A stretch of 64,000 nucleotides of DNA from Marsupella aquatica (GCA_973895155.1 OZ316899.1:643573-707572), one strand, 5' to 3'. Positions 36,409-59,175 are shown, numbered from the stretch's first letter. Notes: generated from the letters alone by a model not told the origin. Made by a program: numbers and translations.

Positions 36409-39400
36409 TGTGGTGCGTCCCATGGCTCCCTAAACCCCAGAAACCCCCCTTCACAAGCCGATTCCCGCAGGTTTCGTGCTTGGCGAGGCTGTTTCCGCGG
36501 CTTAGTGGCATGGGATGCTGCTAACCTCCCTCTACTACTACTATTAACATTTTACACACATATACTGGACAGATCCTTCATCGGGTCATGAGATACGTAG
36601 CCGGCCTAATCTAGGCCTTCCCTTGTCTTCCCCTCCTTCTTGTTAGGTATATTTGGATTCCACCGCCGGAATGATCCCCAATAGGCTTGGTTAAGCCGCT
36701 AAGACCTCTCTCAGCTCGACACATCCAACTCTCACTCCCTTGCTTACTTTCCTTCATCTATTAGTTGATGTGGGCACTCTTCACACAAGTTAATGCGACA
36801 CACAAATAGCAAAATGACTCCTTCTGACTGAGTCATACCATGCACTTGCCATACAAATAGTACATCTCATACACAAGCTCTGCGAACTAAGCCGTGAGGC
36901 CAACTCTATTCAGCTCTTAGGCATGAGGAAACATGAATATACACAAGGGTCATTGTATGACTAACCGAGAGCTTCTCTTACTACTTGATCCCAGCCCGGC
37001 TGGTGCAACTAAAAACTTGCTAAAGAAGAGGCCCTGAGCTCCCCGCTGCCCAGGTACTTATCCTGGTAGTGGATCCGCCTAATTCTTTGCAGCGTAAGCC
37101 TAATCTACCTAACTGAATCTACCTATGTACAGCGAGGCAGGAGTACAAGTGTTGCTCTTACCAGTGGAACCGCAATCCCACTAAGCTAAGTGTCAGGGCC
37201 GCCTCCTGGTCCTGATCCTAATCCTAAACTTAGAGATTTGAGCCCGCCCTGCCCACTCATGCCTCCTCCCTCCACGTCCGCCCTCCTTGAAAGGAGCGGC
37301 CCTCCACCACCATCATGGCAGCGGTGTCTGTCCCTCAGTGGACGCCCCCAATGCTTCCTCCTCAGCCACTGCCGTAGGTTCGTTCTCTGACAGATTAGCT
37401 GTCCTTGACTGAGTCAACTCTCCATCGGCCTGACTAGGTCCACCCCCGGCATCGGCTACGGTATCGGCTTCAACATCAGCCTCGGCTACGGCCTCCCCTG
37501 CACACTTAAGTGGCAGATTGGGTACCTCGGCTTCATTACCGAGTATCCTGGCCTTGGCTTTGTCATCCCCTTCTAGGGTAGTTGGATCCTCTGCCGTAAT
37601 CCTGCCTGAGGTCGGTGCTGGGTTTACCTCCATGGTCACCACGGCCTGTGGAGCCGTATTACTCCTTGACCCTGAAGGTTTCCGTTTCTTCTTCTTTTCT
37701 GGTTTGGCAGCTGGCCCCTTCCCCTTCTCACTTACTTCCGGCACTGGTGCAAATGGCGCGGTTTGTCCTTCGGCCAGTACCACTCCTGGTAACTTAGTGG
37801 CCTCAATTTGAGTTGGCCCTGATGAAGCCAAGCACTTAAATACTGCGGCTTGTTTCTTCAGCCGCTCCGTTTGGTTGTCGGCTCGTCGTTGTAAGTTCTC
37901 TAGCTTCCGCGTGCTTTCCTCCAACTCCTCCTGCACTTCGTCCAGGTCCTTGCGCGCCTCCTCCAACTCCTTCTGGGCTTCCTTCAATTCCTTTTTAAAC
38001 GCAGCTCTCTCCTCCTGGGTCGCTCTTAACTCCTTGTCGAGCTCTGCAATGATGACAGACTCCATCTGGTTCATCTTGGCGTAAGTTTGATCGAGCATAT
38101 TGTCCTTCTCACGCAGGTCGGCTTTGAAGTTGGCCGTCAGGGACGCAAGCTCCTGCTGCAGCGCAATAATCCCTTGATAGGATTTCCCTAACTCGGCCTC
38201 CTTCTTCTCAAGGGCTCCGCGGATAACCTCGAGCTCCCCCTTCAATGCCCTTTCCCTTCTCTGGGTCTCCGCCATGGCCCGGTTGTTGGCCGTTATGTGG
38301 GCCTCCTCTGCATCCCTCAGCTCTCGCTTCCACTTCTCCCGCTCCTTGATTGCATCGGCCAACTCTCCTTGGGTTCGAGTTAGTTTATTCTCGATAATCC
38401 GATTATCAGACTGTGCGGTATCCAATTGGCCCTGCATGATATTTAGCTCATGCCGCTTAATCCGCAGCTCATCTTGGGCTTTCTTGGCTGCCCCCAGGTC
38501 TTTGATTTTGGCTTCTCTTACCCTAAGCCGACGGATGACCTCGTCCTTCTTGCTTCTTTCCAAAGCCACCGCTTCTTCTAATTGGCGCTTCTGCAACATC
38601 TCCCTCTGGAAAAAGGGTCCTTGCTCCAACTCCCCCCCAAAGATGCTGAGTGCTAGCTCTCCACACATTTCCCCGTACTCCATGGCTCTATCCTTAGCAT
38701 AGGTGGAGTAACTAGAAGTCATCGGCATCAACCACCGCGGCCTCTACTCCCAAGCCGTCTTGCGGATTTCTTCTATGGTGGCAAGAGGGTTGCTTTGTTT
38801 TTCTGCAAGCCGCCTGATGTCCTCTGGCCATTCTCCTCCTGGTAAATCCTTTTCCCTAGCCAGGGCTGCCTCTCTTCCTCCCTGATTCGCTCCTGAAATT
38901 CCTGCGCCGTCTGTTTTATGCCGTCAAAGCTCGGGGGAGCGACATCTGGTGGGGGAGACTCGGGGCTGCTCTGCTGGCTTGGGTCTCCTCGAACTACTCT
39001 TGGGAGCGTGGGGATGAACCGGCCACAGGTCCTTACTCCTGGAACATGATGATCCGACCCGTAGCCGGAGTCATCATTGCTGTAGTCCTCTACCGCCTCC
39101 TCTTCGGCTTGGACTACCGGCTTCTCCCGCTGTTCTCCTGGTTTTGTTGCAAACACGGCTTCACCTCTCACCGGTCTTGGTTCCTCTTCCGGCTTCCGTG
39201 TTGATCTCTTGTTCTCCTTGTCGTGGCCGGGAGCTACGGCCTGCTTTTCCTCGGCTTCGGGACTTGAGGCTCCTACATACATCCGGACTCCCGGCTCGTG
39301 TTCCGGCCTCCCTCTCTCCTTGACTCCAGTAAAGGGGTTTTCCCTTGTAAGCCGGCTTAGGTCGGCTTTTGGGGCAGCGTCCTGTATCGGTGCCGGTTCT

Positions 39401-41137
39401 ATTGTCGTTGCCGGAACCGTTCTCCTTTCCTTCTCCAGCAATTTCAGCAGATTCTGCATGCATGGTTGCTGCATCGGCAAGTCTTCTTTCCTTGGTCTAA
39501 ACACCTGCTCGATCGTCGGACTGTCAGGCTGGTTGGGCTTCTCTGGTGCCGGCCTCTGCTCTGGGACCTCCTCCGGTGCTCTTGTCGATAGGGGAAGTAC
39601 TGGGGCAAAGATTTGACTTCTGGCATACCGGCACAACAGCGGCATGTGATAGCCAAGTTGGGACACGCTTCCCACGCCGATCACCTGCTGTTCCTCCTTC
39701 AAGATCTTCTTCAGTTGGTTGAGGAGGTACCCGTTGTAATCCCGGCTTGGGTCTGGCCTTTCTGCCAGGTAGGCCTGAGCCTTGTCGATCTCTGCCCTCG
39801 GCAAGTTACAGTGCATGGTCACCCGCAAGAAATCAATCATCTCTCCGATGTGCGGGTTGGTGCAGGTGTTCCGGAAGAAGCCATTCTTTGTTGATGGTCC
39901 TGGGAACGACCGAAACTCCTTGTCAGGTAAGGTCTTCCTGGTATCAACCTTGGTCTTATTACCCATCGGCAAGCCAAACACTTCAGCAATCACCCATGGA
40001 GTGAGATAGAAATCCTTCCCATACACCCTCGTGGAATTGGTCTCGGGTTCCCATGATCCCACGAATTCTAACAAGTCTGAGTCCGGCACCTCCGGCTTCA
40101 GCCATGGTAATCTTACGAAGGCTTCCAAGCCGGATCCGGCCATGAAGCCTTGGTACTTCTTGGTCTGCATGGCTGTAAAGCATGCATCCTCCTCCCGTGC
40201 AAAGTGTAATTGCACTTCCTCCGGTAGGGTCGCCGCCCAGCCTTTCCAGGTGTCATCGTTTGTTGGAATGGCATTGATGGGGTCGACCTCCTCCTCCTCG
40301 GCTTCTCTTTGCCTCCTGCTCTGTTGTTCTGCTGGCTTCTTTGGTGCCGCCGACCGCGTTCTTTTTGCCGGGGTGGCCTCTTCATTGTTGTTCCCCTTCC
40401 TCTTCATCTCGGCTGTCGTGGATGTCTCTCCTAGCACGGTTGCCTTTGTCCACCCCTCCGTGCTACCCTTCAACTCCCAGTGTATGTCGTTGCAGCATTT
40501 GATGGCTTCTCGGATGCCGACGACTCTGTCTTCGCAAAACAGCAGGTCGTCTAGCTCGTTGCCAGTAGGCGTCCACAAGAATTCAGCCTTGATGAGTTCT
40601 CCTCCTAAGAAGGCAGCTTTCTACAGCTCCCACAATCGGGCAAGCTCCTGCCGTTCTCGAGCTGCTCTCTCTGATTCTGCGTCCTCGTAAGTCCCAATGT
40701 ACTCAGTTGCCCGTTCGAACAGGCATCCCCAAAAATGTGCCGCTTGATTGACGTTGCTCATACCCTTCTCGAGTTGATAGTCGGTATCTGTTCCCACCCT
40801 GAGCGCTTGCCTAAGCAGTTGACAGTAGTTGGCCGCCCGTAGTCGCCTGCTCAGTTCGTGCTTGCAAATGAGCTACTATTCCTCGCGAGCGGTCCTTACC
40901 CCTCTCCTCCTCTGGTTCTCCCTCCCGTTGGTTACCCCTAGCTGCCGGCACTTAGCGTGCCCTAACCCTAATCGTGTTCTCTCCCTTGGCGTCCTTACTT
41001 CCGGCCTCGGCTCGGGTTCCATAGTCACCCTTAATTGTTTATATTTTCCTTATTTATGTAACTATACTAAGGTGTTTCTAGGGTACACTTCCCTTTTCCC
41101 CTTAAACTAGCCCAATGATTCCTGGCTAGGCATCACA
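36409..41137 (-). mobile_element. 4729-bp solo-LTR-like insertion, copy 1, with an internal ORF
   Basis: In ORF orientation it starts TGTGATGC and ends GCACCACA; TSD ACAGG (36404-36408 and 41138-41142); homologous along its length to 51607-56284. Confidence 0.88.
37313..40900 (-). pseudogene. Insert-encoded protein (plant-mobile-domain-like N-terminal half plus long coiled coil), copy 1
   Basis: GLEAFVRLPW..LLEFVGSW..YGKDFYLTPWVIAEVFGLP, then an E/K/R heptad-rich region; broken by a frameshift near 38870 and TAG stops near 38746 and 40622. Confidence 0.7.
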
Positions 41138-42489
41138 ACAGGGAAAGGTAGCTCATTTGTGCCTGCTCGATCTCGGGTCCACTTTGCAGAATTGTGCTCT
41201 TGTCGCTGTTGAAAATTTTCACAATCCTCATGCAGACATCACAGAGAACCCAAACACTTGACGCTTTGGATCTTGTACGAGTGACTATTGTTGTTCAGCT
41301 TTGGGCCAATGTTTGCTCCCGTCTCAATTAACCGGCTCCACATGTAACAATCGTTCTTGTGCTCCATCCCAAAGAAGAAACAACCCTTAGAGTATGGACC
41401 AGTAAAGGGTGGCAACTCAAAAATATGGTCTCCATCATAGAATTCTGGCAATCGCAGAACTCTCTCGGGCAATTTCATGCTCAAAATCTTACGAGCAGCT
41501 TGTACACAACGAGAGGTCCCTTTTCCGTGCAACATGGCATGAACAACACTGACAAGGAACTCATCCTTCCATACCGAATCACCATCTTGGAGACCCTCGC
41601 GGAGGATGGATGCCTTTGAACGAGGTGTCTCCTTTGGTTGACGATAACAAGCTCCACGATCCTCCCAGAATTGGGATGTGTTTGACTAAGGTGTATTCAT
41701 TGGTGAAGGTTCACCATCTCGGAGACCCCCTCTGACATGAATCCCACTGGATCGAGGTGTCTCCTTTGGTGGAGTATCACCATCTCCGAGATCCTCCCAC
41801 ATTCGAAATGAATTCGACCGAGGGGTACTCGTCCGAGAAGGTTCTTCATGTCGGAGACCCTCTTTGACATGGTGTGCACTTGGTATGCACCCCGTCTTTC
41901 TGCAGAGAATATAAGACGCGCCATACTTCAGGTACCACTCTCGCTCATCTCCATCTCCTTTGGATTCAGCAGACGTGGACAACCCGTTCTCGCTCTCCTC
42001 ATAAATCATGAAATCCCCTACCTTCAAACCAAAATGGCTCGCTACTTCATGTTCCTTAGTCACTCGGACAATGTCAACGTTAGAATTACGAAAAACAACT
42101 ACATCCCCCGTTAAAGATGTGATAATCACAAGAGAGGCCATGTTTCCCAAATCCACATAGGGAATGATCTGACATCCCTTAAAACGACAAACTTTGAGGC
42201 TCAGTGTTAACGCACCTGTACGTACCAGTTACGGCCAAGAATACCATTCCGGACAACGTGCATAGAGAAATCGCATGACCCGGAACGATACTTATAACGA
42301 TACAACGTGCGTAGAACGAGCGTATGACCCGCAACGTACTTATAACGAGAATTGTACCGCAAAGAAGGTACCTAATTGCCAGCAGCCGCCAAGAAGGTAC
42401 ATTTCTGCAATGTGTGGATGTGGTACATTCTGCACGTCGTGGTCTTGAAAGTCCCATCGTGCGGGCCCGATCCCCTCTTTGCCCTACAT

Positions 42490-42995
42490 CAACTTTTTAT
42501 CCCTACTACTCGGCGAGGGTCTCTGAGATCTATTCGGGACTCCTGGGGCCCACACTCCTGTGCAAGCTCGAGTTTCACAGTAGGAAATTTGTTGACTTTT
42601 CAACATTGACTGTTCAACATCGACTCTCTGAGTCGGAGCATCATCGACTTTTTATCCCTACTCCTACTCGGCGAGGGTCTCTGAGATCTATTCGGGACAC
42701 CTGGGGCCCACACTCCTGTGCAAGCGAGAGTTTCTCAGTAGGAGATTTGTTGTTTTTGCAACATTGACTGCTCAACATCGACTCTCCGAGTCGGAGCATC
42801 ATCAACTTTTTATCCCTACTCCTACTCGGCGAGGGTCTCTGAGATCTATTTGGGACTCCTGGGGCCCACACTCCTGTGCAAGCGAGAGTTTCTCAGTAGG
42901 AGATTTGTTGTTTTTGCAACATTGACTGTTCAACATCGACTCTCCGAGTCGGAGCATCATCGACTTTTGATTCCGTCTCTTACTCGGCGAGGGTC
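42490..42995. repeat. Tandem array of a unit of about 157 bp (3 copies), each carrying the palindromic motif
   Basis: Repeated tttttatccctac..ctcggcgagggtctctgagatctatt..ggggcccacactcctgtgcaagc. Confidence 0.92.
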
Positions 42996-43954
42996 TCTAA
43001 GATGGATTTGGATGTAGGATTCCCAGATTGCCTCCTTGGCGCAGGTCTACTTCAGAGTTTGGTGTCGGTTGTTTGGAGTGCATATCATACTCGGCGAGCC
43101 TCTCTGAGATATATTCGAGCATTGTAAAAGAGAGAAAATGCCGGTCTGTACGGATATTTGCAAAAAAAATTGGATTCATGGTACGGAGAAGCGTTTCTAG
43201 TTCCATAATCCCATTTGGGCGAGGGTCTCCAAGATATATTCGAGCCTTGTAGAGGAAAAAACGCCCAATTTGGAGTTGCCGAGTCATTTTGTATGGATAA
43301 TTGTAAAAAGTTTATGGATTTATGGTACGGAGAAGTGTTTCTAGTTCCATAGTCCCATTTCGGCGAGGGTCTCCGACATCTTGGGTCCCACGGCGGGGGA
43401 CTAGTGCCTCTCAATTCCATCTCGGAGAGGGTCTCCGAGAGACACGATGCCTGATCTGCCTTACCTTTCCTCCCGTGATATGGTCCAAGAGTTTAGAGGC
43501 ATTGCCATTTCATGCACACTACTCCTTCTCGAAGAGGGTCTCCGAGAGTACAAGGTGTCTGAAGTTCTTCATCTCCTAGATAAAGTGAAGACATTTGGGG
43601 CACGCCTTTCTATGTTGGTGAGGGTCTCTGACATGGAGCAGGGGTCTTTTGGATTTAGATTGTCAACTTCCTTGTCCACAATCCTCTTTTGCGAGTGTCT
43701 CAAAATAGGATGACTGCCAGATGTGGCACACCACGCCATCTCGGAGAGGGTCTCCGAGATCTATCGGTGCTGTCTCATTGCAGCTTTGTATACCCCACCC
43801 AAGGGTATATAGGTTTAGGGTTTAGAGGTCTTTGTCAATCCCGCTATCCATTCTCGGCGAGGGTCTTTGAGATTTGGACTCGTATTGTGGGCCCCCATTC
43901 CCTCTTTGGGATGAGGCTCTGAGATGTTGACACGTCTCAGTATGGGCCGCAATT

Positions 43955-44339
43955 AATTGTCGACGAGGGTCTTTGAGATTTGGACCCTAAATCTCATACC
44001 CCCGTACTGGGCCGTAAACCCTAGAACCTTATGTACTTTCTTGTTTGGCCGCGTACTTTCTTGTTTGGCCCGTTAATTAACAAGATGTACGTTCTCTAGT
44101 ATAGTTCGGATCTCCCGTATCCATGTACTTGTGTGCGGTGCGGTACCGGGGATCTCTCGTATCCATGGAGTACTTCCGTGCGGTGCGGTACATGCGGTAC
44201 GAGGGTCCTTCCTTACTCTTCCTCGTCACCGGTGCGGTACGTGCGGTACGAGGGTCCTTCTTCCTTACTCTTCCTCGTCACTCTTGCTCTTCACGCTTCG
44301 TTAGGGCTTTCAACGTTGTTCTCACTTATCCCTGCGCTT
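43955..44339 (+). promoter_or_regulatory. Shared upstream module, copy 2
   Basis: Homologous to the reverse complement of 32106-32410; precedes the gene starting at 44891. Confidence 0.65.
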
Positions 44340-47300
44340 CCTCACTCTTCATCATTCACTCCCCGTCTCATTCACTCCCCGTTATTCCTCACGCATCCTC
44401 GCTCTTCCTAGGTCCCCTCCGCTCTTCGTCCCAGTCTTCCAATCACGTTGGCTTTCCTCTCTTCCACTTATTCTCGGCAAGTGTGGCCGTGTGCCCTGGT
44501 TTGCGAAGGTGTTTTGAAGGCTTCACCTTGGCGGCGGTCGAGTCTCATAGTTTCAAGCTCTGTGCTGGTTGGCAAAGGTGATTTGAAGGTCTCAGTTTGG
44601 TTTGAGCTTGGCAGCGGTCGACTCTTGAAGTTTCAAGCTTTGTGCTGCAAAGGGTGATTTGAAGGTCTCAGTCGGCGGTGGTCGAATCACTCTCAGCGGG
44701 TTGTAGTTTCAAGCGCGGCGCTTCACCCATCTCTGAGGTTGGATCTTTTGTTCACTGCATGACTGTCTACACGATTTGAATGTATGTTGCAAGCTCGACA
44801 TGTCAAAAAAATTTCTCGGTGGGGCTTGCCGAGATGTATGGTTATTGTGAAGTAATTCTTGAATGTTTTCTCATGTAATCTTAGATCACAATGGTGAAGA
44901 GGAAAGACTCGGCTGGTTCTGTTGATAGTGGAACTTCTCAGCGGAGTAAGAAACAACGGTCTTTGTCCCCTTCGCCAGTGACATCTCGACTAACACGCTC
45001 ACAAGGTGGTCCCCTTGTGGAGTCAATGGACTCAAGGAGGAAGTTTGAGCCAAAGCAAATATCGTTCGAGCCAATTGGAGCAGCGGAATTAGCAGATATT
45101 GCAGAGAAGGGAGCTTGGGAGTCGATCGTCTCCAAGTATGAGATGAAGTTTGAAAAGGATCCTCCCCGGATCCCCTTATGCCGGCTCATGCCAATGGAGG
45201 CCGTCAGGAATCTTCATGATGAGTCAGTGGTCAAACTAAAAAAAGGATTCAGAGAGAGCGGCTATGTTGTAAAGCTCAGCGAGTTCCACATCACTGAGTT
45301 CAATGAAGTAGGGGAGACGAGGACAGTGGCAGAGTTCAAGCCCTATTGGGACTTGCTATGGACTGCAATCAATGAGCAGTTTGAGCAAGAGTGCGATGCG
45401 TCAGAGGACTTCAAAATGCTCAAGGATAAGATGTTTTGGGTTTTTGACGGAAACCATAGGTACACAGCTTGGTCTGCAGTTGCGGAGGAGTTTCCAGATC
45501 AACCGCAGTACCATCCGTGTGTCAGATTCTCTCTTTTGAACGCTGGAAAGGACGGATTCAAGAAGGTTGAGCAAGCAATGCACGCTCTGAACTCGTAAGT
45601 AACTCACATTTTGCAACAACAGGTATACAATATCGTTTCCCTTGTGTGAATACCCTATTGGCAATCTGTCAAAGATTGCCCTATTTGAATGTTAGACCTA
45701 AGAACATTCTTTGCCATGTCCAGGATAAGCGTGACTGTCGTGAGGACGTCATGGTTCAATGACGCCGATCGGGTGGCGAAGCTGTTGAACACTCCATTGG
45801 AGGAGTACAGTTCGCTTATGTCCAAGGAGACGCTAGAGGGTTTCCTCAAGGCTCGAAATCGTGGCCACGGGAAGACTTGGTACTCCAAGAACATGACAAA
45901 AGAGGCAGTTGTGTACATCATGAGCTGGTCAAACATTGAAGCGGGGCGAATCAATATTTCGAAGGAAATGGCACAAGACACAGGTCGTGGGCACCCGTGG
46001 AATGCCAAGAGACTTGAGCATGAGACTGAGGCAATGATTACTGCTGCGTGCAAGAGCTGGGACACTAAGTTCCCCAAGCTCGCGGCCTGTGTGAATCCAG
46101 CCAATGGTTTGGAATTCATCCCGGCATGTCGACAGCTCTATCACAAGTTGGCAAAGGAGGCCAAGCAGGGTGTCATGAATGTGCAGGTTGGATTGGACAG
46201 GATCCGCTTGTTTTCTAGGGCTTGGTTAACTGCAGAGTGCAGATTAAGACTCTTGAAGGCTCATTTTGGAACGGAGGAAGATAGGAGTAGGTATCACCAT
46301 CCACGTAGCAATAGTGATTCAGCGGTTAGATCATGGCTAGCAGTGTGGTCAATGTGGTGTTACATTGACTACGTTGGTTGTATCTTGTTGACCAATTTTG
46401 CTGAGAAGGCCTACCAGCCTGGCAATTTTAGCGGAACGCGAGAGGAATTTGCTGAGCTTTATAGAAAGCTTTACCGATCTTATGTGCAAGAGAAATCCTT
46501 AAAAGTAGGCGGTGACATTTGGAATGAAGGGAATACCAAATTGGCGTTTTGGGAAGCGTGGATTAAGCGAACAAAGCGGTGCGTGACAAGATTTCTCATA
46601 CATCAGGAGAACATGAATGCAACGATGTTGAAACAACTACCATTGGCGATTAGATCTTGGATGGAGGCTACAGGTAGCCTTAGCATGTATCCATGTGATG
46701 GTCGCATGCCTCATGGCAGAGTATTCTCGGATTGGGAATGGAGGAACTGCCCATGGTACATGGAGTATGACAATTGGAACACTTTTCTCGAGGTTGCCGA
46801 GAAGGATAGTGCAGACCTGCTCAAAGAAGCACAGGAACCTAGTAATTACTATGATATAACAAAGTTGCGACAACTGTCAGATTCAGTAACGGAGGCAACA
46901 GAGGTGGAGACCCTTATCCCAACTGACCATGCCTATGACGAGAAGAAGGCCAGAAAAGAAGGTGAACGGAAGGTTGAGAAGGAACCATCAAGCGACATCA
47001 GTCAGTCTAACTCGCTAACCAGTCCAAGAAAAACATCAGGTATTACTCGATTCCTTTCGCACTGCATAGTGGTTTCATTTGGAACTACATCTTGGCTGGG
47101 TTTGCTAACATAGTACTAAACCAATTTTGGGGTCGTTGAGATAGACTGCATCTCATCTCGGCGAGGCTCGCTGAGAACAAACAAGTTCCAGTCGCATCTC
47201 GTCCGAACCCTTGGATCTCATCTCGGTGAGGCTCGCTGAGAAGAACAGCCAAATGTCGTCCGGACCTTTGCAGATGAAGTATAATGTCAAGTGTCTGGAT

Positions 47301-48369
47301 GTCATGTCGGCGAGGCTTGCGGAGAAGCTTAGGATCAATAACCCCATTGCTTTGCAATCTATCCAGGTATGATGGAGATACCGGAGGAACCAGGTTCTGT
47401 AAAAAGCAAGGCTGTAGAAGTGGCTTCAAAGCCAATTATAGAGAAGGCTCCACAACCAACAATAGAGTCGGCTACAGAACCAACTGCAGAACCAATGATA
47501 GAGCCGGCTACACTACAATAAGGCAACCAGCAAGTGGAGCAACAAAGCGTGCAGCCTTCAACAGAGCCAATGGTAGACCAGCCTCTGGACCAACAAAGCG
47601 AGCAGGAACAAGAGCATGACGCATCCCAGGGAGAGAACGCAACCCAAGGAGGGGATCATTCAGACGACATACGGGTAGATAATGAAGGAGAAGATGAACG
47701 GGTAGAGGACGAAGGAGAAGACGAACAAGAGGGGCGTGAGTCTGATACTCCGGCGCCGAAATGGATGCCATTATCCTCAAGGCCAAAGACAAAGGCTGCA
47801 AAAAAGACCAAAACAACGAGGCCCAAACCTCGCCGCGCAAAAGCACGTGACACTGAGCTTGAAGACATTCCGCCCAGCCCCATAGAGCAACCCCCGCCTA
47901 GCACCATACCACAACCCCCGCCCAGCCCAATAGAGGTTCCGCCCACGACAATCCAACATGAGGCCCCAACGGATGGCCCAAATTATGAAGAGGACGTTGA
48001 AGGCGAACCGGAGTCGGATGGCACAGAGGTGGTTGGAGTTCGGCGTTCAAGCGCCGATAACTTTTCTTCCCCGCTCAGGCGTTGTTATTTTAAATGGTCT
48101 CCGTATCTTTTCAAAACTTACTTTGACGCTGCCAATGACAGTAAAGAACCGGCTGTGGTACTCCGTTTTAGAGACTGGTGCAGAAAGCTTAGGCGGGGTG
48201 GTTTGGCTGCAGAAGGCTGGCTAAAGAACGGGAAGCCTGCAAGGTCTGGTGCAAATCTGATTCTGATTCAAATGGGATCAGACACCCGCATGCACGCGGA
48301 TGGGAACATCCCATTGTGGAATTTGTTCCGGCCAGACGACCTCAGTCGGGTTGAGGATTTTGTGCAAGT

Positions 48370-50829
48370 TGTGACGCCAATGACGTGGTCCTTATTTTGT
48401 AATCTGATTAAGTAGGTTGCTGTATGCAAGGAGTAGCTATTGATATTGCATAACAATTAGCAAGATGGCAAGAATAAGGGCAATCATGGCGTTAAGAGTA
48501 GGGAAATAAAAGCTATGTCGCGGGTGGTCGACGACCATATCTCTTTCAATATGTCACCAAATCCGGATCTGTAAAGAGCATTGGAAAGATCTGGTCAAGG
48601 CGAGTAAAATCGATATAAAACACTCGGGAAACGGAGGTGTATTAAGAGAGATACGGCCTGATTAGTGTGACGGGTTAACTTATGGCCGGAATTAGCGGAT
48701 TCGGCTTCAGTTTCGGGTTAACCCAAGCTCGACCACGGCTTAGCTTATGTGAGCACGGCTTCAGCTTAGCTCAGGTCAGCACGGCTTCAGCTTAGCTTAG
48801 GTAAGCACGGCTTCAGCTTAGCTCAGGTAAGAACGGCTTCAGCTTAGCTCAGGTCAACACGGCTTCAGCTTAGCTCAGGTCAACACGGCTTCAGCTTAGC
48901 TCAGGTCAGCGCGGCCTCAGGTTAGCATAGGTAAGCTCGGATTCGGGCTCAGCTTAGGCTAGGTTAGCGGATAGCGGATAGCGGATAGCAGCCTAACCCG
49001 AGACCACGGGTTAGCTCTACTCGGGTTAGATAGGATAGCTAGGTTAGCCAAATTCGGGTTAGCTATGTAACTCGGGTTAGCGCAGCAGTGAGTACCCCCT
49101 CTCGGTTGCGGGGGCATAACTCTCTGTGTATTTGACCAAATCGGCTATAATTGACCTCGTTGGAAAGAGGAGCTCAAGCCGCTTCCAACGCTGCTATCCA
49201 CGCAGAAAATGGTTAAATAGAGAAATCGGGAGAGGAGGCGCAAGCTCGCGAAAACTATGGAGGAGGGCCGAATCCGAAGTACATAGCCAATTCGAGATAG
49301 AAATAAAGTTGCGAGTTAGGGTTCAGTAGTTAGAGATAGTGGCGGCTCTGTTAGGGCTGGGATGGGGCTCCAGCAGCGTAGTATCCACCCATTTGGGCTC
49401 AGTATGAGAGTATATAGAGCAGCCCCCGGTAGAGGCAAGGGGGGGGGGGGACTTCAGTTGTGTGATCTCACTTAGACTGAGCAGCGGGGAGGAGCTCTGT
49501 GCAAGCAAGGCTGGACTTGGACGCTGCGTGTTGGGGAGAGCTTGGTTGTGCTATTACTCAGGGAGTAATCAGCCAAGCTTCACAGCAACGGGTTGCTAGG
49601 TTTGCGAGCTGGATTGTGGCTCTTTCTAGTGGGCAGCACAACTGGGTTCTTTTCCCCCGATACAGAGCCTTGGTGATAGGTGATGTATTGGTGATTGTAA
49701 ACTGTGGGGAGGATTTCAATTCGATTTGCGGTGGGCACATTAGGGAGGCTGAGGTACTGATTAAGGGGCAGCAGGAGGAGCATTTACAGTTCAGTCTGGC
49801 AAGGCTACGTGATCCATGGGGAGTCCCGGCCTTTGTCTGGTGGAGAGCACTAAGGGATCTATGGCCAGAGCTGAGCTTGCAGGGCAAGCATGAGGCCGGG
49901 CCTCATTGCAGTCTGGGGTAGATCGCCGTTAGGCCTAGTACCAGCTTTGAAGTCGAGTCAACTATGCATGCGTAACTTGACGTTCTGAATTGGAGGTGTG
50001 AGATCTGTATGTGCCCCCAAGAATGAAGTGCAGTGAAGGAGGTTGAGTTCAGGATTGAGTTTGCAAGGCAAGTACGGGATTGGTTCGAGTCCAATCTGCC
50101 GTCGCAATCTGGAGTGAGCCGGGCTCAGGTTCAGGATTGAGCTTGCATGGCAAGCACGGGGCTTGCAGGGCAAGCACGTCACAATCTGGAGGAGACAGCC
50201 TTCGGCCCTAGTATTCGGATCAAGTGTTCTCAGTGAACTATTGTGCACATCTTTGAATCTAATTGAGTTTTCCTCTCAGGCCTCATTTCTCTCATGGATG
50301 TGTGTGTGTGTGAGGCAATTTGAGTGTATGATGGAACTAGCAGCGCCACTGAGAGGTGTACCGGGTGCATTGAAGCGGGCTGGGTGAGGACTGTCATAGC
50401 TCTGATTGTTGAGAGTGGAATGGCAGAGTGGTGGGGCAATGGCTTAGAAGTCCCTAAGCCGGGAATCAGTCAGGAGTCACTGGTTTATGGGTACATTCCG
50501 GCGGCGGAATAGAAACATACCTATGACAGTAAGCATATGTATAGACCTATTGCGCACCGTAGTGCTAGGCCCTGTGTGTACGGGCCCGATATGAAGACCC
50601 CTTCTCACCAGAACTATCATGAGTGCAGATCTGATCCCCAACCTTGGTTCCTTGGGATTGAGCTTGGGTGATGTGTGATAGAGTCTTGCTATGATAGTCT
50701 GGTGTTAAGGGCATAAACTGGTGTTTATCGGCATTCACAACATCCCTTCGTGATCCTCAGGTACAAGGAGATGGTTTTGGCACCCATAGTGACGTTTTTG
50801 GTGTTAAGACCCATGTCAATCGCGTGACA
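48370..50829. mobile_element. 2460-bp solo-LTR-like insertion
   Basis: Termini TGTGACGC...GCGTGACA; TSD CAAGT (48365-48369 and 50830-50834); excising it restores the host ORF. Confidence 0.9.
48752..48930. repeat. Tandem array of a 26-bp unit (about 7 copies)
   Basis: agcacggcttcagcttagctcaggtc at 48752, 48778, 48804 and onwards. Confidence 0.92.
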
Positions 50830-51606
50830 CAAGTTTTCCTCGATGATGAGGGATTGTTTGGCATAGTGCACAGTGCTTCGGTTGCCCACTCCGTAGTACT
50901 TTGTGACAGTCTCAATTACGAAGAGACCAATTGGGTGCTGAAAGACACCTTTTTCATCTGGAACGCCACACCCACCTTCGACTTCACGACTCGAAAGCGG
51001 GTAAGTCTAATAGATTTAACTCCATTCTTGTCTTATGTTCTTTCGGTGACTTGTACTCAGAAAGACTCATCACTGACTTTGTTCTGTACGTCCAGAGTGA
51101 ATATCTCAAGCTGGACCTTTGGGGATTTAAATCGTCTGCCGAGGTATGCCCAAAGGATGACGTGAAGCCAATCAGTGTCGAGCTTGATATGAAGTTGAGG
51201 AACGGGCTAACTAACTATACAACGGGTCAGAATGAGACCATTGATGATTTTGGTGGCACCTTGTCTCCAGCTACACTCCAATGTATAATAGAATATACAA
51301 CTAAGCCAGGGGGAACTGTGGTCACGTTCAATGCACACTTCGGGGCTATCTTTAAGGCTGGTGAGAACTGTGGGCGGATGGTCTTTGGGACCGAATCCTA
51401 TCCGTACTTCAAATCTTATGCGGAAGACACGATGACAGAGTTCGTTGGAGTGCCTCTAACGGAGCAAGAGGAGGCAGTGGATCGTCGAAAATCCAATCCA
51501 GAAAAGCGCAAGAAGAAAAAGCCTTCATGTGAGTTTACTACCGTTTCCCTTCAATGATTTTAATATTGTCCCATAGTATTTCAGCGGACTCTCCGAGATG
51601 GCTCTC

Positions 51607-54600
51607 TGTGATGCCTAGCCAGGAATCACTCGGCCAGTTAAGTGGGTAAAGCAGGAGTGCACCCTAGAAACACCTTAGTATAGGGACTAAACAAGGAAAA
51701 TATAAACAATTAGGGGCGACTAGGAACCCGGGCCGAGGCCAGAGGTAAGGACGCTGGGGGTGAAAACTCGATTAGGGTTAGGGCACGTTAAGCGTCGGCG
51801 GCTAGGAAGGATTAACGGGAGGAAGGACCGGAAGAGGAGAGGGGTAAGGAGCGCTTGCAGGAGATGGTGGCTCATTTGCAAGCACAAACTAGGTAGACAA
51901 CTACGGGAGGCCAACTACTGTCAGCTGCTTAGGCAAGCACTCGGGGAGAGAGTAGATACCGACGATCGACCTAAGGAGGGTATGAGCAACGTCAATCAAG
52001 CGGCACATTTCTGGGGATGCCTGTTCGAACGGGCAACTGAGTACATCAAGACTTACGAGGACGAAGAATCAGAAAGGGCAGCTCGAGAATGGCAGGAGCT
52101 CGCTCGATTGTGGGAGCTGCAGAAGACGGCTTTCTTAGGAGGCAAACTCATCAAGGTCGAGTTCTTGTGGACTCCTACTTCCAATCAGCTCGACGATCTT
52201 CTGTTTTGCGAAGACAGAATCATCGGCATTCGAGAGGCCATCAAGAACTGCAACGACATACACTGGGAATTGAAGGGTAGCACGGAAAGGTGGACCCCGG
52301 CAACGATGCTAGGAGAAACCTCCAAGGCAGCCGAGATGAAGAGGAAGGGAGCCGTCAACGATGAAGCCACCCCGGCAAAAAGAACGAGGTCAGCGGCACC
52401 AAAGAAGCCAGCCGAGCAGCAGAGCAGGAGGCAAGGAGAAGCCGAAGAGGAGGAGGTCGATCCCATTAATGCCATTCCAACCAGGGATGGCACCTGGAAA
52501 GGCTGGGCGGCAACCCTACCAGCGGAGGTGCAACTACATTTTGCACGGGAGGAGGATGCATGCTTTACGGCCATGCAGACCAAGAAGTACCAAGGCTTCA
52601 TGGCCGGATCCGGCTTAGAGGCCTTTGTAAGATTACCATGGCTGAAGCCGGAGGTACCGGATTCAGACCTATTAGAATTCGTGGGGTCATGGGAACCCGA
52701 GACCAATTGCACAAGGATATATGGGAAGGATTTCTATCTTACTCCCAAGGTGATTGCCGAAGTGTTTGGCTTGCCGATAGGCAATAAGACCAAAGTTGAT
52801 ACCAGAAAGACCTTGCCTGACAAGGAGTTCCGATCGTTCCCCGGGCCATCAACGAAGAATGGCTTCTTCCGGAACACCTGCACCAACCCGCACATAGGAG
52901 AGATGATCGACTTCTTGCAGGTGACCATGCATTGTAACTTGCCGAGGGCAGAGATCGGCAAGGCACAGGTCTATCTGGCAGAGAGGCCAGACCCAAGCCG
53001 GGACTACAACGGGTACCTCCTCAACCAATTGAAGAAGATCTTAAAGGAGAAGCAGCAGGTAATCGGCATGGGGAGCGTGTCGCGGCTTGGCTATCACATG
53101 CCGCTATTGTGCCGGTATGCCAGAGGTCAGACCTTTGCCCCAGTACTTCCCCTGCAGGTAAGGGCACCCGAGGAAGCTCCAGCACCGAGGCCGGTAGCAG
53201 AGAAGCCTCAACCACCTGATAGCCCTACGATTGAGCAAGTGTTCAGGCCAAGGAAGGAAGACTTGCCGATGCAGCAACCAAGCATGCAGAATCTGCTGAA
53301 AATGCTGGAGAAGGAAAAGACGGCACTGGCACCAGCTTCGGCAGTGGCACCAATATAGGACACTGCCCCAGAGGTCAACCTAAGCAGACTTAGAAGGGAA
53401 AACCCCTTTACCGGAAATAAGGAGAGAATCAAGCCAGAATCCAAGCCGGGTGTTTGAATATACGTGGGAGTCTCAAGCTCTAAATCTGAGGCAGAATTGC
53501 CTGAAGCTCCTATCGGCGAAGACGAGAGGGAGAAGCCGGAAGTTCAAGGGTTGGAGGAGGCAGTGGAGGACTGCAGCCATGATAACTCGGGCTATGGGTC
53601 GGACCATCACGTTCCAGGAGTAAGGACCTGTGGCCGGTTTATCCCCACACTTCCAAGGGTAGTACGAGGGGACCCCAACCAGCAGAGTAGCCCTGAGTCT
53701 CCCCCACCTGATGTTGCTCCCCCGAGCTTTGACGGCATAAAACAGACGGCGCAGGAATTTCAGGAGCGAATCAGGCAGGAAGAGGAGGCAGCCCTGGCTA
53801 GGGAAAAGGATTTGCCAGGAGGAGATTGGCCGGAGGACATCAAGCGGCTAGCCGAAAAAGGAAGCAAACCTCTAGCCATGATTGAAGAGATCTGCAAGAC
53901 GGCTTGGGAGCAGAGGCCGCGATGGGCAATGCCGATCACTTCTACTTACTCCACCTACGCTAAGAATAGAGCCATGGAGTATGGTGAGATGTGTGGGGAA
54001 CTTGCGCTTGGCATCTTTGGGGAGGAGTTGGAGGTAGGACCCTTTTTCCATAGGGAGCAGTTGGAGAAGCACCAATTAGAAGAAGCGGTGGCTTTAGAGA
54101 GAACCAAGAAGGACGAGGTCATCCGGCGGCTTAGGAGGATGGAAGCCGAAATTGAAGATCTAAGGGCGGCCAAGAAAGCCCAAGATGAACTGCGGATTAA
54201 GCGGCATGAGCTGAACATCATGCAGGGGCAGTTGGACACAGCGCAAGCTGATAGTCAGATTATCAAGGATAAACTAACTCACACCCAGGGAGAATTGGCC
54301 GACGCAATCAAGGACAGGGAGAAATGGAAGAAGGAGGTGAGAGACGCAGAGGAGGCCCATATAGCAGTCAACAACCGGGTCACGGCGGAGACTCAGAGAA
54401 GGGAGAGGGCGCTGAAGGGAGAGCTCGAGGTCATCCGCAGAGCCCTTGAGCAGAAGGAGGCCGAGTTAGGGAAATCCTATCAAGGGATTATTGCGCTACA
54501 GCAGGAGCTTGCGTCCCTGACGGCCAGCTTCAAGGCCGACCTGCGGGAGAAGGACGCCCAGCTCAACCAGACTTATGCCAAGATGAATAACATGGAGTCT

Positions 54601-56284
54601 GAGGTCGTAGCGGAGCTCGACAAGGAGCTAAGAGCAACCCAGGAGGAGAGGGCTACCACCAAGAAGGAATTGAAGGAAGCCCACAGGGAATTGGAGGAAG
54701 CCAAAAACAAGCTGGAGGAGGCACGTAAGGACCTGGATGAGACCCAGGAGGAGTTGGAGGAAAACACGAGGAAGATGGAGAACCTACAGCGGCGGGCCGA
54801 CAACCAAACTGAGCGGCTGAAGAAACAAGCCGCAGTATTTAAATGCTTAGCTGCATCAGGTCCATCTCCCGTTGGGGCAAACCAGTTACCAGGGGTGGTA
54901 ATTGCCGAAGGACCAGCCGTGACACACGGCCCGGTGCCGGACGTTGGCGGCAAAGGGAAGGAACCGGCTGTGGAGATAGTGAAGAAGAAGAAGCGGAAAC
55001 CTTCGGGGTCCGGAGGTTATTCGACCCCTCAAGCCATACTCAAACCGACACCAACCTCCGACATGAACACGGCAATAGATTCTGCTATCACCAAAGTTGC
55101 GGATGACGTGGCCCAAGCCGAACTACTCAGTAATGAGGCCGGTATCTCAGATCCACCTCTTGAGCAGGCTGGGGAGACAGTGGCCGAAGCTGAGGCCGTA
55201 GCCAAGAATGATTCCCGAGCCAATGCCGAAGCCGAGGGTGGGCCCAGTCAGGCCGATGAAAAGTTGACTCGGTCAGAGGCAGGTAATCTGTCAGAGGACG
55301 GACCTACGGCAGTGGCTGAGGAGGAAGCGTTGGGGGCGTCCATTGAGGATCCACCACCGGTGTCGTGACGATGCAAGGGCACCGTTCCTTTTAGGAAGGG
55401 CGGACGTGGAGGTAGGAGGCGTGAGTGGGCAGGGCGGGCGCTGATCTCCAAGTTTAGGATTAGGATCAGGACCAGGAGGCGGCCCTGACACTTAGCTTAG
55501 TGGAATTGCGGTTCCACTGGCAGGAGCAACACTTGTGCTCCTTCCTTGCTGTACATAGGTAGATTCGGGCAGGTAGATTACTGTTAGGTAGGTTAGGCTT
55601 ACGCTGCAAAGAATTAGGCGGATCCACTACCAGGATAAGTACCTGGGCAGCGGGGAGCTCAGGGCCTCTTCTTTAGCAAGTTTTTAGTTTGCACCAGCCG
55701 GGCTGGGATCAAGTAGTAAGAGAAGCTCTCGGTTAGTCATACCGTGACCTTGTGTATATTCATGTTTCCTCATGCCTAAGAGCTGAATAGAGTTGGTCTC
55801 ACGGCTTAGTTCGCAAAACTTGTGTATGAGATGTACTGTTTGTATGGCAAGTGCATGGTATGACTCAATCAGAAGGAGTCATTTTGCTATTTGTGTGTCG
55901 CATTAACTTGTGTGAAGAGTGCCCACATCAACCAGAAGGAAGAAAGTAAGCAAGGGAGTGAGAGTTGGATGTGTCGAGCTGAGAGAGGTCTTAGCGGCTT
56001 AACCAAGCCTATTGGGGATCATTCCGGCGGCGGAATCCAAACATACCTAACCAGAAGGAGAGGAAGACAAGGGAAGGCCTAGATTAGGCCGGCTACGTAT
56101 CTCATGACCCGATGAAGGATCTGTCCAGTATATGTGTGTAAAAGGCTAATAGTAATAGTAGAAGGAGGTTAGCAGCGTCCCATGCCGCTAAGCCGCGGAA
56201 ACGGCCTCGCCAAGCGTGAAACCTGCGGGAATCGGCTTGAGCTGGGGGGTTTCTTGGGTTTAGGGAGCCATGGGATGCACCACA
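51607..56284 (+). mobile_element. 4678-bp solo-LTR-like insertion, copy 2, with an internal ORF
   Basis: Termini TGTGATGC...GCACCACA; TSD CTCTC (51602-51606 and 56285-56289). Confidence 0.88.
51760..55368 (+). pseudogene. Insert-encoded protein, copy 2 (one frame of about 1200 codons with two stops)
   Basis: ORFs 51760-53358 and 53464-55368 share a frame; TAG at 53356 and TGA at 53458 correspond to sense codons in copy 1. Confidence 0.75.
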
Positions 56285-56739
56285 CTCTCCATCTAGGCAA
56301 ATCCATCTCGGCTGACCTCTCCGAGATGCATGTCGGCCGGCCTAGCCGAGAGGATCGCATCTGGCCGGGGCACTTTGAGATTTGCTGGAAAGTCCCTCTC
56401 AGCTGGCCTCTCCGAGATGCATGTCGGCGGGCCTCGCCGAGAGGAATCGCATCTGGCCTGGGCATATTCAGATTTCCAGGCAAGTCCATCTCAGCGGGCC
56501 TCTCTGAGATGCATGTCGGCGGGCCTCGCCCAGATGAATCCCGGGTGGCCTGGCCACGTCAACTTCTACTGGCAAGTCCACGTAGGGCCTTAGATGCGTC
56601 TGGAGGGACAAAAATACATCTTGGCTAGCCTCTCTGAGATCTATCTCAAAAGGCGACTCAATGGATTATCTGGGGTGTCCACATCGGCTCACTTGCCTCA
56701 CCAATTCGTTCTTGTGATCCGTCTATTTCGGCGCAATAC

Positions 56740-57942
56740 ATGATTCGATGTAAGTATAACTTAGTAGCAGTTCCCGACAGGACCACCGAGTCGGCAACCG
56801 AGGAATGGGACACACAGGACAGACGACTTGTGAAGCTTGCTTGGGAGGAAGCTTCGGCATTATTCTCTCCGGAGAAGTCAAGCCTACCGTGCTGCGCTGA
56901 TACGTATCATGAAGAAAAAGTTGCTCATTTTGTGAAAGAGAGAACAAGGAAGACTCTCAAATTTGTCGATGATAAGGCAGAAGAGGCTGAATCGGATGAG
57001 AGTAGCTCGGTAGGAAGTGATAGTGATAGTCTCCAAACTCACCATGCAAGCATAAGTTTGTCAAGCTCCAATTCCGAAGAGTAATTTTTGGGTGAATTTA
57101 CCTTCATTGCAGCTCAGAAGCAAACTGAGCCACAACAACCAGTCGACGAGGTAGTGACGGCCCAGCAAGGAGTCCATTAGGGGGTGCCTGTGCACCAACG
57201 ACCGAATTAGGGGGTGCCTGTGCACCAACGACCGAATTAGGGGGTGCCTGCACAACGACATCAACCCGCCATACTTGCGACCATAGTCAAAGAAGCATTG
57301 GACTCCAACAGGGACCAAGATGAAGTCCTAGTCAGCCTCGGTGACTTAAAATTGAAGAGAAAAGATTTCAAATACTTGAGGGCAAAAAAATGGCTCACTT
57401 GTGACATCATCAATGCTTACATTCCTCTATTGGAGCGTAGAGCAGAGGTCATTGCAAAACCCAAATGCATGCTTTTGCCCACACATTTTTACAATGTCTT
57501 GACGCATCCTGCGTACAGCTTCAACGCAGCGTTGGCATTTGTGAAGGGCATTGACGTCTTTTCATTCTACCTCATTCTAATCCCCATCCACAGGCCAAAA
57601 CATTGGGTACTAGCTGTGGTCGATTTTACTTTGCAGCAACTACATTTGCTAGATCCCATTGGAGGCGAAGCATCGGAATGCGACGATTTGGTGAATGTCG
57701 GTCGGTTTCTCCATGACCTATCCTGCTTGCGCAGTTGTCCCCACTTATCGCCATTACAATGGCAACGCATCATCCGCGACGATATTCCAGCCCAACCCGA
57801 TAGTTACAATTGTGGAGTATATGTCATAATGTACATGGAGCGTCTTTCTAGAGGCTCTGTATTGGCGGTTGACCCTAAACATGTACTGCTTATACGACAA
57901 AAGATTATTGTAGACCTAATCTGCCAGACGATCAGTTTGTAG
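56740..57942 (+). pseudogene. Ulp1/C48-family SUMO protease-like gene
   Basis: WLTCDIINAY, LIPIH..KHWVLAVVD and QPDSYNCGVYV give an intact His-Asp-Cys triad plus Gln in ORF 57244-57942; upstream 30-bp repeats contain TAG stops. Confidence 0.85.
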
Positions 57943-58259
57943 ATAGAGGATCGATGGATTGCCTTTGTGAATTCAATTTGTGAATATTTCACAACAGAGC
58001 AACATGTTGTATACGAAGTAAAATAAAAATTTCCTCCAAAGGTTATGTTCTGGTCCTGTACTTTCTACGCTGGACCCCATGTTGTTTTTCAATGTCATGC
58101 CGAGCTCTCCTGGATAAGTCGGCGAGGGTCTTTGAGATGAGTCTTTGAAAGGGACGTGTTGTATGGACTCTGTTGTACGATGTGTTGTATGGATCCTTTT
58201 TGAGATTTAGTAGCAACACCCCATGATATATCGAAGACCCTGTGTGAGAAGTTTTTTTT

Positions 58260-58320
58260 TTCCTCGAATTTCAGTTGAATCTCGGCGGGGCTCGCTGAGA
58301 TTCAACTAAACTTCGAGGAA
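58260..58320. other. Imperfect hairpin near the right end of the Mutator-like element
   Basis: ttcctcgaa-tttc-agttgaatctc / gagattcaact-aaac-ttcgaggaa, with the recurring motif in the loop. Confidence 0.75.
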
Positions 58321-59150: not shown

Positions 59151-59175
59151 GAGAGAAACAAGCCTCTTGAATAAA

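Follow-up and report, generated by a model that had tools for sequence, protein, structure and literature searches.

A dead copy of a transposon-associated liverwort gene with a ParB/sulfiredoxin-type domain, a degenerate methylase-like domain and a probable Ulp1 protease in Marsupella aquatica

Transposon factors that defeat host silencing have been well characterised mainly for VANC of Arabidopsis. VANC binds a short motif, repeated in arrays in VANDAL introns and upstream regions, and its action leads to loss of methylation (PMC5735166, PMC10398659); Ulp1 is present in some VANC genes (PMC5735166; PMC13317346). Ulp1 has also been captured by Mutator-like elements of Arabidopsis, melon, rice and grapevine (PMC13317346). 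Here we describe a gene that touches two known kinds, the transposon-encoded accessory or anti-silencing factor and the captured prokaryote-type methylase. It starts at position 44891 of a 64,000-nucleotide stretch of the Marsupella aquatica genome (GCA_973895155.1, OZ316899.1:643573-707572; hereafter the window) and is one dead copy of a liverwort gene that is multicopy and associated with transposons. The gene anatomy set out below we hold with high confidence. For the whole of our best explanation, a dead copy of a ParB/pseudo-methylase/Ulp1 gene together with an accessory-factor mechanism, we put the chances at slightly less than even.

Beta-class N6_N4 methylases are essentially prokaryotic and viral. 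In eukaryotes, rotifer N4CMT and Marchantia DN4MT1 have been ascribed to horizontal transfer (PMC8885841; bioRxiv 10.1101/2021.02.12.428880), and a 2026 preprint describes Dam-type adenine methylases, a different class in a different carrier, in retrotransposons of other eukaryotes. Full-text literature searches returned no description of a gene that joins a ParB/sulfiredoxin (Srx) domain, a pseudo-methylase and Ulp1 in plant transposons.

The exons and introns of the gene are listed in Table 1. With the segment 56771-57081 included, the conceptual coding sequence has six exons and 3,933 nt and is interrupted by a single stop, an in-frame premature TAA at 47519-47521 within the Pro/Glu/Gln-rich linker of exon 3. 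All four of its junctions follow GT..CAG with compatible phases. Exon 1 is spanned by an open reading frame (ORF; 44891-45598) that carries ...KMFWVFDGNHRYTAWS..., including FDGNHR. We observed that the homologous ORFs all stop at ...ALNS (18 homologues aligned), the stop codon falling inside the GTAAGT donor. An intron at 51001 had been claimed in an earlier reading made from the sequence alone (the sequence-only reading), and it proved to be real. P0036 has an in-frame, read-through intron of 69 nt at the same site, where Riccia P0050 too is given an intron by its NCBI gene model. The intact protein would comprise ~1,300 residues or more in five parts: a ParB/Srx domain, a helical domain, a disordered linker, a methylase domain that is dead but retains the positions that define its fold and, very probably, Ulp1.

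This copy is inactivated, because it carries both the TAA at 47519 and an insertion of the long terminal repeat (LTR) type that begins at 48370, within an exon. That such an insertion hides the gene had been proposed; its TG..CA ends, its target-site duplication (TSD) and an uninterrupted site in a related liverwort all bear this out. It is a true LTR-type insertion because its flanks are contiguous and in frame at the empty site in Calypogeia fissa (locus L001), and excision of 48370-50829 restores ...EDFVQVFLDDEG.... Since it has no internal LTR pair and no reverse transcriptase (RT) or integrase (IN), it is probably a solo LTR (or a non-autonomous unit); it also has no long ORF, and no full-length element matching it was found within the window.

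After excision and splicing, the motifs ANLILIQMG, FLDDEGLFGI, FFIWN and LQCIIEYTTKPGGTVVTFNAHFG...GRMVFGTE are all present, and they align column for column with DPPY, the next strand and motif I of true beta-class methylases. A profile built from exon 4 and three homologues matched 38 proteins at E <= 1e-3 (1.84 billion representatives searched), the closest of which form one subfamily. Of the 20 matches scanned, most gave a weak to moderate Pfam N6_N4_Mtase (PF01555) hit, these being largely the distant ones (E 1e-11 to 1e-3), with coverage of model positions ~163-221 in most and 2-212 in P0050. Two of the scanned proteins exceeded the Pfam gathering score, and two of four close homologues matched PF01555 (E 0.025). 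The window's own exons gave no significant match in Pfam or NCBIfam. UniRef labels two named matches, from the Calypogeia and Riccia set, 'DNA methylase N-4/N-6 domain-containing protein'. When Riccia P0050 was compared with phages and plasmids by tblastn, the matches were weak (E 0.02-0.5), and nearly all of those listed fell on DNA methylase or methyltransferase genes.

A MAFFT alignment of the liverwort family with methylases from a Klebsiella IncFII plasmid and a Gordonia phage showed the permuted motif order, IV before I, and hhalign gave a probability of 94.6% (E 6e-8) over motif I. Against the PDB, a profile of seven full-length liverwort domains matched CcrM (E 4.8e-6 over 170 residues) and DpnA (1e-4), plus type III Mod, M.MboIIA and M.RsrI; all eight matches were beta-class methylases. 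Taken together, these profile, hhalign and PDB matches establish homology of the domain to the beta-class amino-methyltransferases, in the permuted order with IV preceding I. The beta-class N4/N6 pattern recognised at the C-terminus by the sequence-only reading was therefore upheld.

The catalytic positions of the domain are degenerate, as had been claimed for IQMG and FNAHFG. In the window copy, IQMG (48266-48277) occupies the DPPY position (motif IV). The same position reads QLGT in P0036, SVGT in Calypogeia P0003, FLPN in P0040 and P0049, CLPN in P0045, DLPS in Riccia P0053 and P0057, and DPPT, the nearest to intact, in Riccia P0050. (D/S/N)PP(Y/F/W) was intact in none of the nine relatives with a readable N-terminal half. 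At motif I, TFNAHFGA (51324-51347) stands in place of DPFxGSGT. Two forms of this motif occur in the family, (T/S)(F/L)NA(Q/H)FGA in ~20 sequences including the window and D(W/F/C)xxGxG in ~20 others. The window subfamily has lost the D and the first G of the S-adenosylmethionine (SAM) loop, and the sister subfamily partly keeps FxGxG. The HPTQKP stretch before motif I is lost as well. Other positions are invariant, for example PG, NCGR, FG.E, WN and HS.S. Judged from sequence, the domain appears to be conserved, but not as an enzyme. The earlier idea of a catalytically dead reader or shield fits this pattern of a replaced DPPY beside many strongly conserved positions.

The same reading had also offered a 4mC/6mA (N4-methylcytosine/N6-methyladenine) writer in intact relatives, and such enzymes might mark the palindromes of the element described below. 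Some observations are in keeping with active writers: the sister subfamily keeps D..xGxG in motif I (~20 sequences), Riccia P0050 keeps DPP and bears the UniRef methylase name, and liverworts use a bacterial-type 4mC methylase (bioRxiv 10.1101/2021.02.12.428880). The family as sampled speaks against them, since DPPY or SPPY was found in none of the nine N-terminal halves and HPTQKP is gone. No relative resembling an active writer was found among those sampled, and we regard this alternative as highly improbable.

We next turn to the N-terminal domain, for which a ParB-type identity had been claimed. DGNHR lies at 45446-45460, and D-G-N-H-R and nine other positions are invariant in the 18 homologues; the motif context in this alignment is DGNHR(L/Y)TAW, not GERRxR. 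An AlphaFold2 (AF2) model from the 18-sequence alignment (m263beb153c20) had a mean pLDDT (predicted local distance difference test) of 73, with a core of ~90 and the first 59 residues disordered. In this model DGNHR sits between strand 182-186 and helix 188-200, a position that matches the family's phosphate-binding loop at the strand-to-helix junction. Foldseek against the PDB (best E 0.016, probability 0.99) returned sulfiredoxin, ParB, Noc, KorB, SerK, SbnI, PadC and Pfu-392566 as its top ~43 matches. Against the viral predicted structures of BFVD (best E 9e-4), the matches were mostly ParB-like nucleases, Spo0J-like proteins and DndB-like 'sulfur modification' proteins, and they also included a 'DNA methylase' of 479 residues from Mycobacterium phage Vincenzo as well as proteins of giant viruses. 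We accept a ParB/Srx fold for the modelled domain, the match lists being uniform though single scores are weak. With the invariant DGNHR, this bears out the earlier claim at the level of the fold.

Canonical ParB membership was rejected: the domain has no ParBc match, no GERRxR motif for cytidine triphosphate (CTP) and no recognisable helix-turn-helix (HTH). ParBc was matched by none of the 18 members at E <= 10 in Pfam. Exon 1 and its profile had no significant match in Pfam, NCBIfam or PDB sequence searches, the weak Pfam matches among family members (DUF1015 in two, DndB in one) were not significant, and tblastn of the domain against phages and plasmids gave nothing meaningful. The best viral structural matches include uncharacterised proteins of Faunusvirus, Cafeteria roenbergensis virus, Gaeavirus and Marseillevirus, which makes a giant-virus route possible for the ParB-like module.

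A domesticated bacterial ParB-methylase fusion is a plausible origin for the gene. As the ancestor put forward earlier, such a fusion was not borne out: there is no ParBc match, phage and plasmid tblastn gave no match to the ParB-like part, and ~650 residues lie between the two modules. Among bacterial and viral sequences, none came near enough to point to a donor.

The domain encoded by exon 2 (~400 residues) has 60 invariant columns in six sequences. It has no Pfam match, and its profile has no PDB sequence match. The AF2 model was all-helical (pLDDT 69, predicted template modelling score (pTM) 0.60), and Foldseek of this model against the PDB returned noise only (probability <0.1, template modelling score (TM) <0.2). 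We conclude that this domain is novel and without a known relative.

The start of the gene at 44891 agrees with the earlier span of 44891-51557; its end is probably not at 51557. At 51529 we observed a conserved GTGAGT donor, which encodes the peptide 'CEF' conserved in three homologues, and a candidate exon 5 that is phase-compatible with it lies beyond a nested insertion. Further downstream, a Ulp1 domain matches PF02902 (Peptidase_C48) at E 2.2e-21 (77 bits against a cut-off of 20.7), with H, D, Q and C in the usual Ulp1 order by eye (...KHWVL...LLDP...QPDSYNCG...). The Logan contig P0033 (1,357 bp) has one ORF, of 341 aa, in which the methylase-like domain's C-terminal half runs straight into a Ulp1 domain 33% identical to the Ulp1 ORF of the window. 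This contig could stem from a spliced transcript or from a copy that lacks introns. Calypogeia L001 shows the succession of the window, a WD..AWE segment, an acidic Ser-rich stretch and the beginning of Ulp1 coming after exon 4. Because of the P0033 fusion, the order in L001 and the donor at 51529, the gene probably continues into Ulp1. On this sequence evidence, Ulp1 probably forms the C-terminal part of the gene product, and if not, it is probably still part of the element.

The closest named relatives are in the liverworts Calypogeia fissa and Riccia sorocarpa, and relatives up to 86% identical occur in sequencing-run and metagenome assemblies. Copies were found at at least five Riccia loci, on different chromosomes, and at least four Calypogeia loci. 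Order and strand of the ParB-like, middle and methylase-like parts do not differ between the window, Calypogeia L001 (8681-11722, then 17465-17797) and Riccia L004 (6251-6952, 7190-8756, 9824-11148). In addition, the gene models P0003, P0053 and P0061 each run across the middle domain and the methylase-like domain. Both the shared order in three species and the bridging models argue against two adjacent genes in the element, one for ParB and the middle domain and the other for the methylase-like domain and Ulp1, as do the compatible phase of intron 2 and a linker that is open but for one TAA. What suggests two genes is the start of NCBI model P0050 at the methylase-like part and the separation of the parts by a long low-complexity linker and a repeat-filled intron. 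We consider two genes rather unlikely.

The degree of conservation also bears on whether the gene is a decaying passenger, that is, a methylase and ParB-like gene gained once, whether from a bacterial, phage or giant-virus source or by capture from the host, and carried without function. Its catalytic motifs are gone, this copy is broken three times, and genes captured by plant transposons usually end up as pseudogenes (PMC13317346). Set against this, the architecture and dozens of invariant positions are kept between Jungermanniopsida (Calypogeia) and Marchantiopsida (Riccia) at 25-45% identity, and the degenerate motif I is itself conserved as TFNAQFGAIY in ~20 sequences. Because the architecture, the invariant positions and the degenerate motif I are all conserved, we infer selection for a non-catalytic role and find the passenger explanation very unlikely.

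The gene lies among copies of a 21-bp palindrome, counted here as TCTCGG-N9-CCGAGA with at most two mismatches. We found 32 such sites in the window compared to 1.8 expected, and none of 100 shuffles reached 32. They form clusters at 30170-30832, 35094-35195, 41717-44834, 47156-47325 (intron 2), 56306-56639 and 58280, in non-coding parts of the ParB gene and of a neighbouring transposase-like gene, including sites between the two minus-strand transposase-like ORFs (35094, 35175). A 4.7-kb insertion landed inside the downstream array, and a half site remains at 51590-51599. The upstream array overlaps a tandem repeat (42487-43011, period ~158 bp, 92% identical) with one degenerate palindrome per unit (42508, 42666, 42824). 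In Calypogeia L001 the same palindrome occurs 19 times compared to 0.1 expected, mostly as perfect TCTCGGAGAG-C-CTCTCCGAGA, upstream of the ParB exon, after the homologue of 50835-51000 and just before the exon-4 homologue. The palindrome appears to be under constraint, because the window and L001 proteins are only ~45% identical. The conserved 21-bp palindrome (TCTCGGAGAGCCTCTCCGAGA) is a directly testable candidate binding site.

Because the gene is sited among these conserved palindromes, it looks like the transposon's own DNA-recognition or anti-silencing factor. By analogy with known transposon factors, its protein would be an accessory factor of the element, not a DNA-methylating enzyme. 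Recognition of the element's TCTCGG-N9-CCGAGA palindromes would fall to the dead methylase domain, perhaps together with the ParB-like and helical ones, the targets being the arrays upstream of the gene, in its introns and downstream. Ulp1 brought to these sites would then keep the chromatin of the element unsilenced, or mark the element for its transposase. VANC and Kaonashi of the Arabidopsis VANDAL elements offer the analogy, as they bind motif arrays in non-coding parts of their own element. We hold this mechanism, in which an accessory factor reads the palindromes through a dead methylase and brings Ulp1 against silencing, as tentative and on balance somewhat doubtful.

Its main rival is that the palindromes are binding sites of the transposase, comparable to the subterminal repeats of En/Spm or Mutator, and that the ParB/pseudo-methylase/Ulp1 protein does something else. 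The protein might then be a ParB-like, nucleotide-dependent clamp or bridge for excised DNA, or a deSUMOylase targeted by protein contacts. The placing of palindrome clusters at the outer sides (30170-30832, 56306-58300) and beside the transposase-like ORFs resembles subterminal repeats, and the Riccia, L002 and L003 copies retain the protein but not the palindrome. The ParB-like domain probably still binds a nucleotide or phosphate, to judge from the invariant DGNHR, and this too would suit a clamp; the canonical GERRxR CTP motif and the helix-turn-helix were not detected, which tells against that role. Beta-class methylase domains are sequence-specific DNA binders, often of palindromes, which favours a DNA-reading role for the protein itself. 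The arrays also occur in intron 2 and directly before the ATG, like the targets of VANC (PMC5735166), and we judge binding by the transposase to be unlikely.

Several observations weigh against the accessory-factor explanation. The palindrome is absent from Riccia L004, L002 and L003, which may use another motif. That the protein binds the palindromes is what we infer, and the transposase is the classical binder of subterminal repeats. The exon chain is a conceptual coding sequence, and the splice from exon 4 to Ulp1 is only phase-compatible, the splice model reaching 57081. NCBI models in Riccia and Calypogeia split the region, with P0050 covering the methylase part only. A ParB-like AF2 prediction was confident in one of five models, with weak Foldseek E values (0.016 for PDB, 9e-4 for BFVD). 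The protein has no sequence similarity to VANC, and neither DUF1985 nor DUF287 occurs among the Pfam matches of the exons, P0001 and P0003. In the window, no terminal repeats or TSD of the host element were found, and the transposase-like ORFs at 33574-36407 have no Pfam match.

A bolder version of the accessory-factor explanation is a transposon-built, eukaryotic 'parS/ParB-like' self-recognition system, in which ParB/Srx and the dead methylase would read the palindromes and deliver a SUMO protease, and the element would escape silencing. It would allow a possible shared origin with DN4MT1: the transposon may have carried that horizontal transfer, or may have copied the host enzyme as a decoy. 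We think this quite unlikely.

The carrier of the gene is likely a DNA transposon and possibly a non-TIR (without terminal inverted repeats) Mutator-like element. The case for a transposon comprises the multicopy nature of the gene, Ulp1, the palindromes shared with the divergent minus-strand ORF pair at 33574-36407, and a counterpart of this pair near a Riccia copy. Specifically, over its C-terminal 64 aa the transposase-like sequence shares 48% identity with a sequence that lies 3 kb upstream of the Riccia copy. The pair is interrupted at 36408 by a twin of the 4.7-kb insertion. Because it has no Pfam match, the transposase call is tentative, and a Mutator-type assignment of these ORFs was set aside, its motifs being recognised by eye only. 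The sequence-only reading had called the gene borne by a plant DNA transposon. A repeated, transposon-associated gene stands; the class is likely rather than established, and no ends were found.

Four other candidates for the ends or contents of the host element were rejected. One, an inverted repeat (32106-32414 / 44339-43844), falls within the region of the palindromes, with the gene outside it. Its arms (~300-500 bp, 80-85% identical) enclose the transposase-like ORFs and the twin insertion; they could mark the two ends of a shorter derivative element or stem from duplication of a promoter region. The similarity between 26741-27165 and 59146-58743 is coding sequence of two CACTA-type transposase fragments. 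CACTA termini with a TSD (ATG) were found only at 18930 and 28790, and they delimit a separate element without the gene. Lastly, the ORFs at 51760-55368 lie inside a nested 4.7-kb TG..CA insertion with its own TSD.

Table 1. Coordinates of the gene and associated features in the window
Feature	Coordinates	Strand	Remarks
Exon 1: disordered basic N-terminus, then ParB/Srx-fold domain	44891..45594	+	18-homologue alignment, AF2, Foldseek
Intron 1	45595..45723	+	GTAAGT...CAG, phase 2; donor position shared by homologues
Exon 2: conserved all-alpha middle domain, ~400 residues	45724..47039	+	alignment, AF2
Intron 2	47040..47366	+	GTATTA...CAG, phase 1; holds three palindromes (47156, 47221, 47305)
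Exon 3, first part: Pro/Glu/Gln-rich linker, then methylase-like start	47367..48369	+	
LTR-type insertion, 2,460 bp, TG..CA	48370..50829	.	TSD CAAGT at 48365-48369 and 50830-50834
Exon 3, second part: FLDDEGLFGIVHS...FFIWN, middle strands of methylase-like fold	50835..51000	+	
Intron 3	51001..51095	+	GTAAGT donor, CAG acceptor ending 51095, phase 0; position common to P0036 and Riccia P0050
Exon 4: C-terminal half of methylase-like domain	51096..51557	+	stop at 51555
Second nested insertion, 4,678 bp, TG..CA	51607..56284	+	TSD CTCTC at 51602-51606 and 56285-56289
Candidate exon 5 (inferred), phase-compatible with 51529 donor	56771..57081	+	WD..AWE and acidic Ser-rich segments, same position in Calypogeia
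Ulp1 (C48) SUMO-protease domain	57244..57942	+	Pfam PF02902
Upstream palindrome array, 13 sites	41717..44834	.	last site 57-77 bp before ATG
Downstream palindrome array, 7 sites, ~91-bp period	56306..56639	.	
Divergent transposase-like ORF pair (35425-36407, 33574-35049)	33574..36407	-	SWIM-like CxC...CxH near C-terminus, by eye
Twin 4.7-kb unit, 85% identical to 51607-56284	36408..41137	-	TSD ACAGG; interrupts minus-strand ORF

The window is eukaryotic, repeat-rich DNA with Gypsy, Copia, a complete CACTA element and several nested insertions. The insertion at 51607-56284 lies in a downstream intron or spacer of the gene and, like its twin, carries two long ORFs (532 aa, and a 634-aa coiled coil). 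Neither 4.7-kb twin has an internal LTR pair or RT/IN; perhaps they are giant solo LTRs that contain ORFs, or else a non-autonomous element not yet described. Within the Calypogeia homologue of the gene (L001 13737-14291) there is a distant relative of the 532-aa ORF, with 24% identity. Two paralogous small minus-strand ORFs (31169-31576, 32694-33122), which sit between the left palindrome cluster and the transposase-like gene, share ...RKWR(F/Y)L(V/I)T.S..WAA..., and one has a weak F-box match (E 0.007).

Elsewhere in the window, a Gypsy-type element (90-10060) has LTRs at 90-448 and 9532-9877 (93% identical), RT, RNase H and integrase, with a PHD finger after the integrase core (8257-9417). 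A Copia polyprotein ORF (13376-17464) is uninterrupted over 1,362 aa (gag, protease-like barrel, integrase, RT). The complete CACTA element at 18930-28790 has 14-bp termini CACTAGTACATTTT and a 3-bp TSD (ATG); its ORFs include DUF4216 (27275-28045), a KTHDYH-type transposase segment (26663-27202) and a weak SET-domain match (23718-24662). A second CACTA-type transposase remnant lies on the minus strand (58743-59146 and 60723-62456), with an ORF matching Pfam DUF7869 (E 3e-39) followed by a segment 73-84% DNA-identical to the transposase of the 18930-28790 element. The ends of this remnant (58743-62456) were not found in the window and may lie beyond it.

Overall, every sequence feature pointed out by the sequence-only reading was found again in its place. 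Of its interpretation, the fold, the methylase homology, the insertion, the intron and the repeat nature of the gene held; the writer, the fusion ancestry and the transposon class were not borne out by the data. The middle domain, the premature TAA, the second nested insertion, the likely Ulp1 end and the conservation of the palindrome in Calypogeia had escaped that reading.

Compared to bacterial, plasmid and phage beta-class enzymes (PF01555; CcrM, DpnA, M.RsrI, M.MboIIA), the liverwort domain has the same permuted order, IV before I, but has lost DPPY and HPTQKP, has a degenerate SAM loop and is encoded with introns and an appended Ulp1. Phage ParB-methylases likewise place a ParB-type domain N-terminal to the methylase, as is probably the case, from the fold match, in the 479-residue Mycobacterium phage protein. 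The size of that protein suggests a compact fusion, whereas the liverwort ParB and methylase parts are separated by ~650 residues that include the novel 400-residue domain. The ParB/Srx superfamily (DndB/DGQHR, DUF1015, SerK/SbnI, sulfiredoxin, ParB/Noc/KorB) shares the fold and the position of the D-G-x-H-R loop with the liverwort domain, which differs in having no significant Pfam model, no GERRxR CTP motif and no recognisable HTH.

MpDN4MT1a/b of Marchantia, also a liverwort, and N4CMT of bdelloid rotifers are likewise beta-class N6_N4 domains in eukaryotes. By their description they are set apart from the gene studied here: they are active, keep TSPPY, and are host genes that are neither multicopy nor transposon-associated. 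No additional domain accompanies the methylase in MpDN4MT1, and N4CMT bears a chromodomain (PMC8885841), whereas the gene studied here is multi-domain. That gene would show how, in nature, a DNA methylase fold has been recruited as a probable reader of DNA without catalysis.

The closest functional analogy, and we mean it as an analogy, appears to be with the anti-silencing genes VANC and Kaonashi (KIU) of VANDAL, which are non-TIR Mutator-like elements. Both are transposon-encoded and not transposases, as proposed for the liverwort gene, and in both cases arrays of a short motif lie in the introns and upstream regions of their own genes, as in the liverwort locus. The proteins are unrelated in sequence: VANC has DUF1985/DUF287 and a 9-mer motif, whereas the liverwort gene has ParB/Srx, helical and dead methylase domains and a 21-bp palindrome. 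Binding and anti-silencing are known for VANC, compared to conserved cis arrays in introns and flanks on the liverwort side. If our explanation is true, an early-diverging land-plant lineage would hold a second, unrelated anti-silencing solution, built from ParB/Srx and a pseudo-methyltransferase, modules otherwise typical of plasmids and phages.

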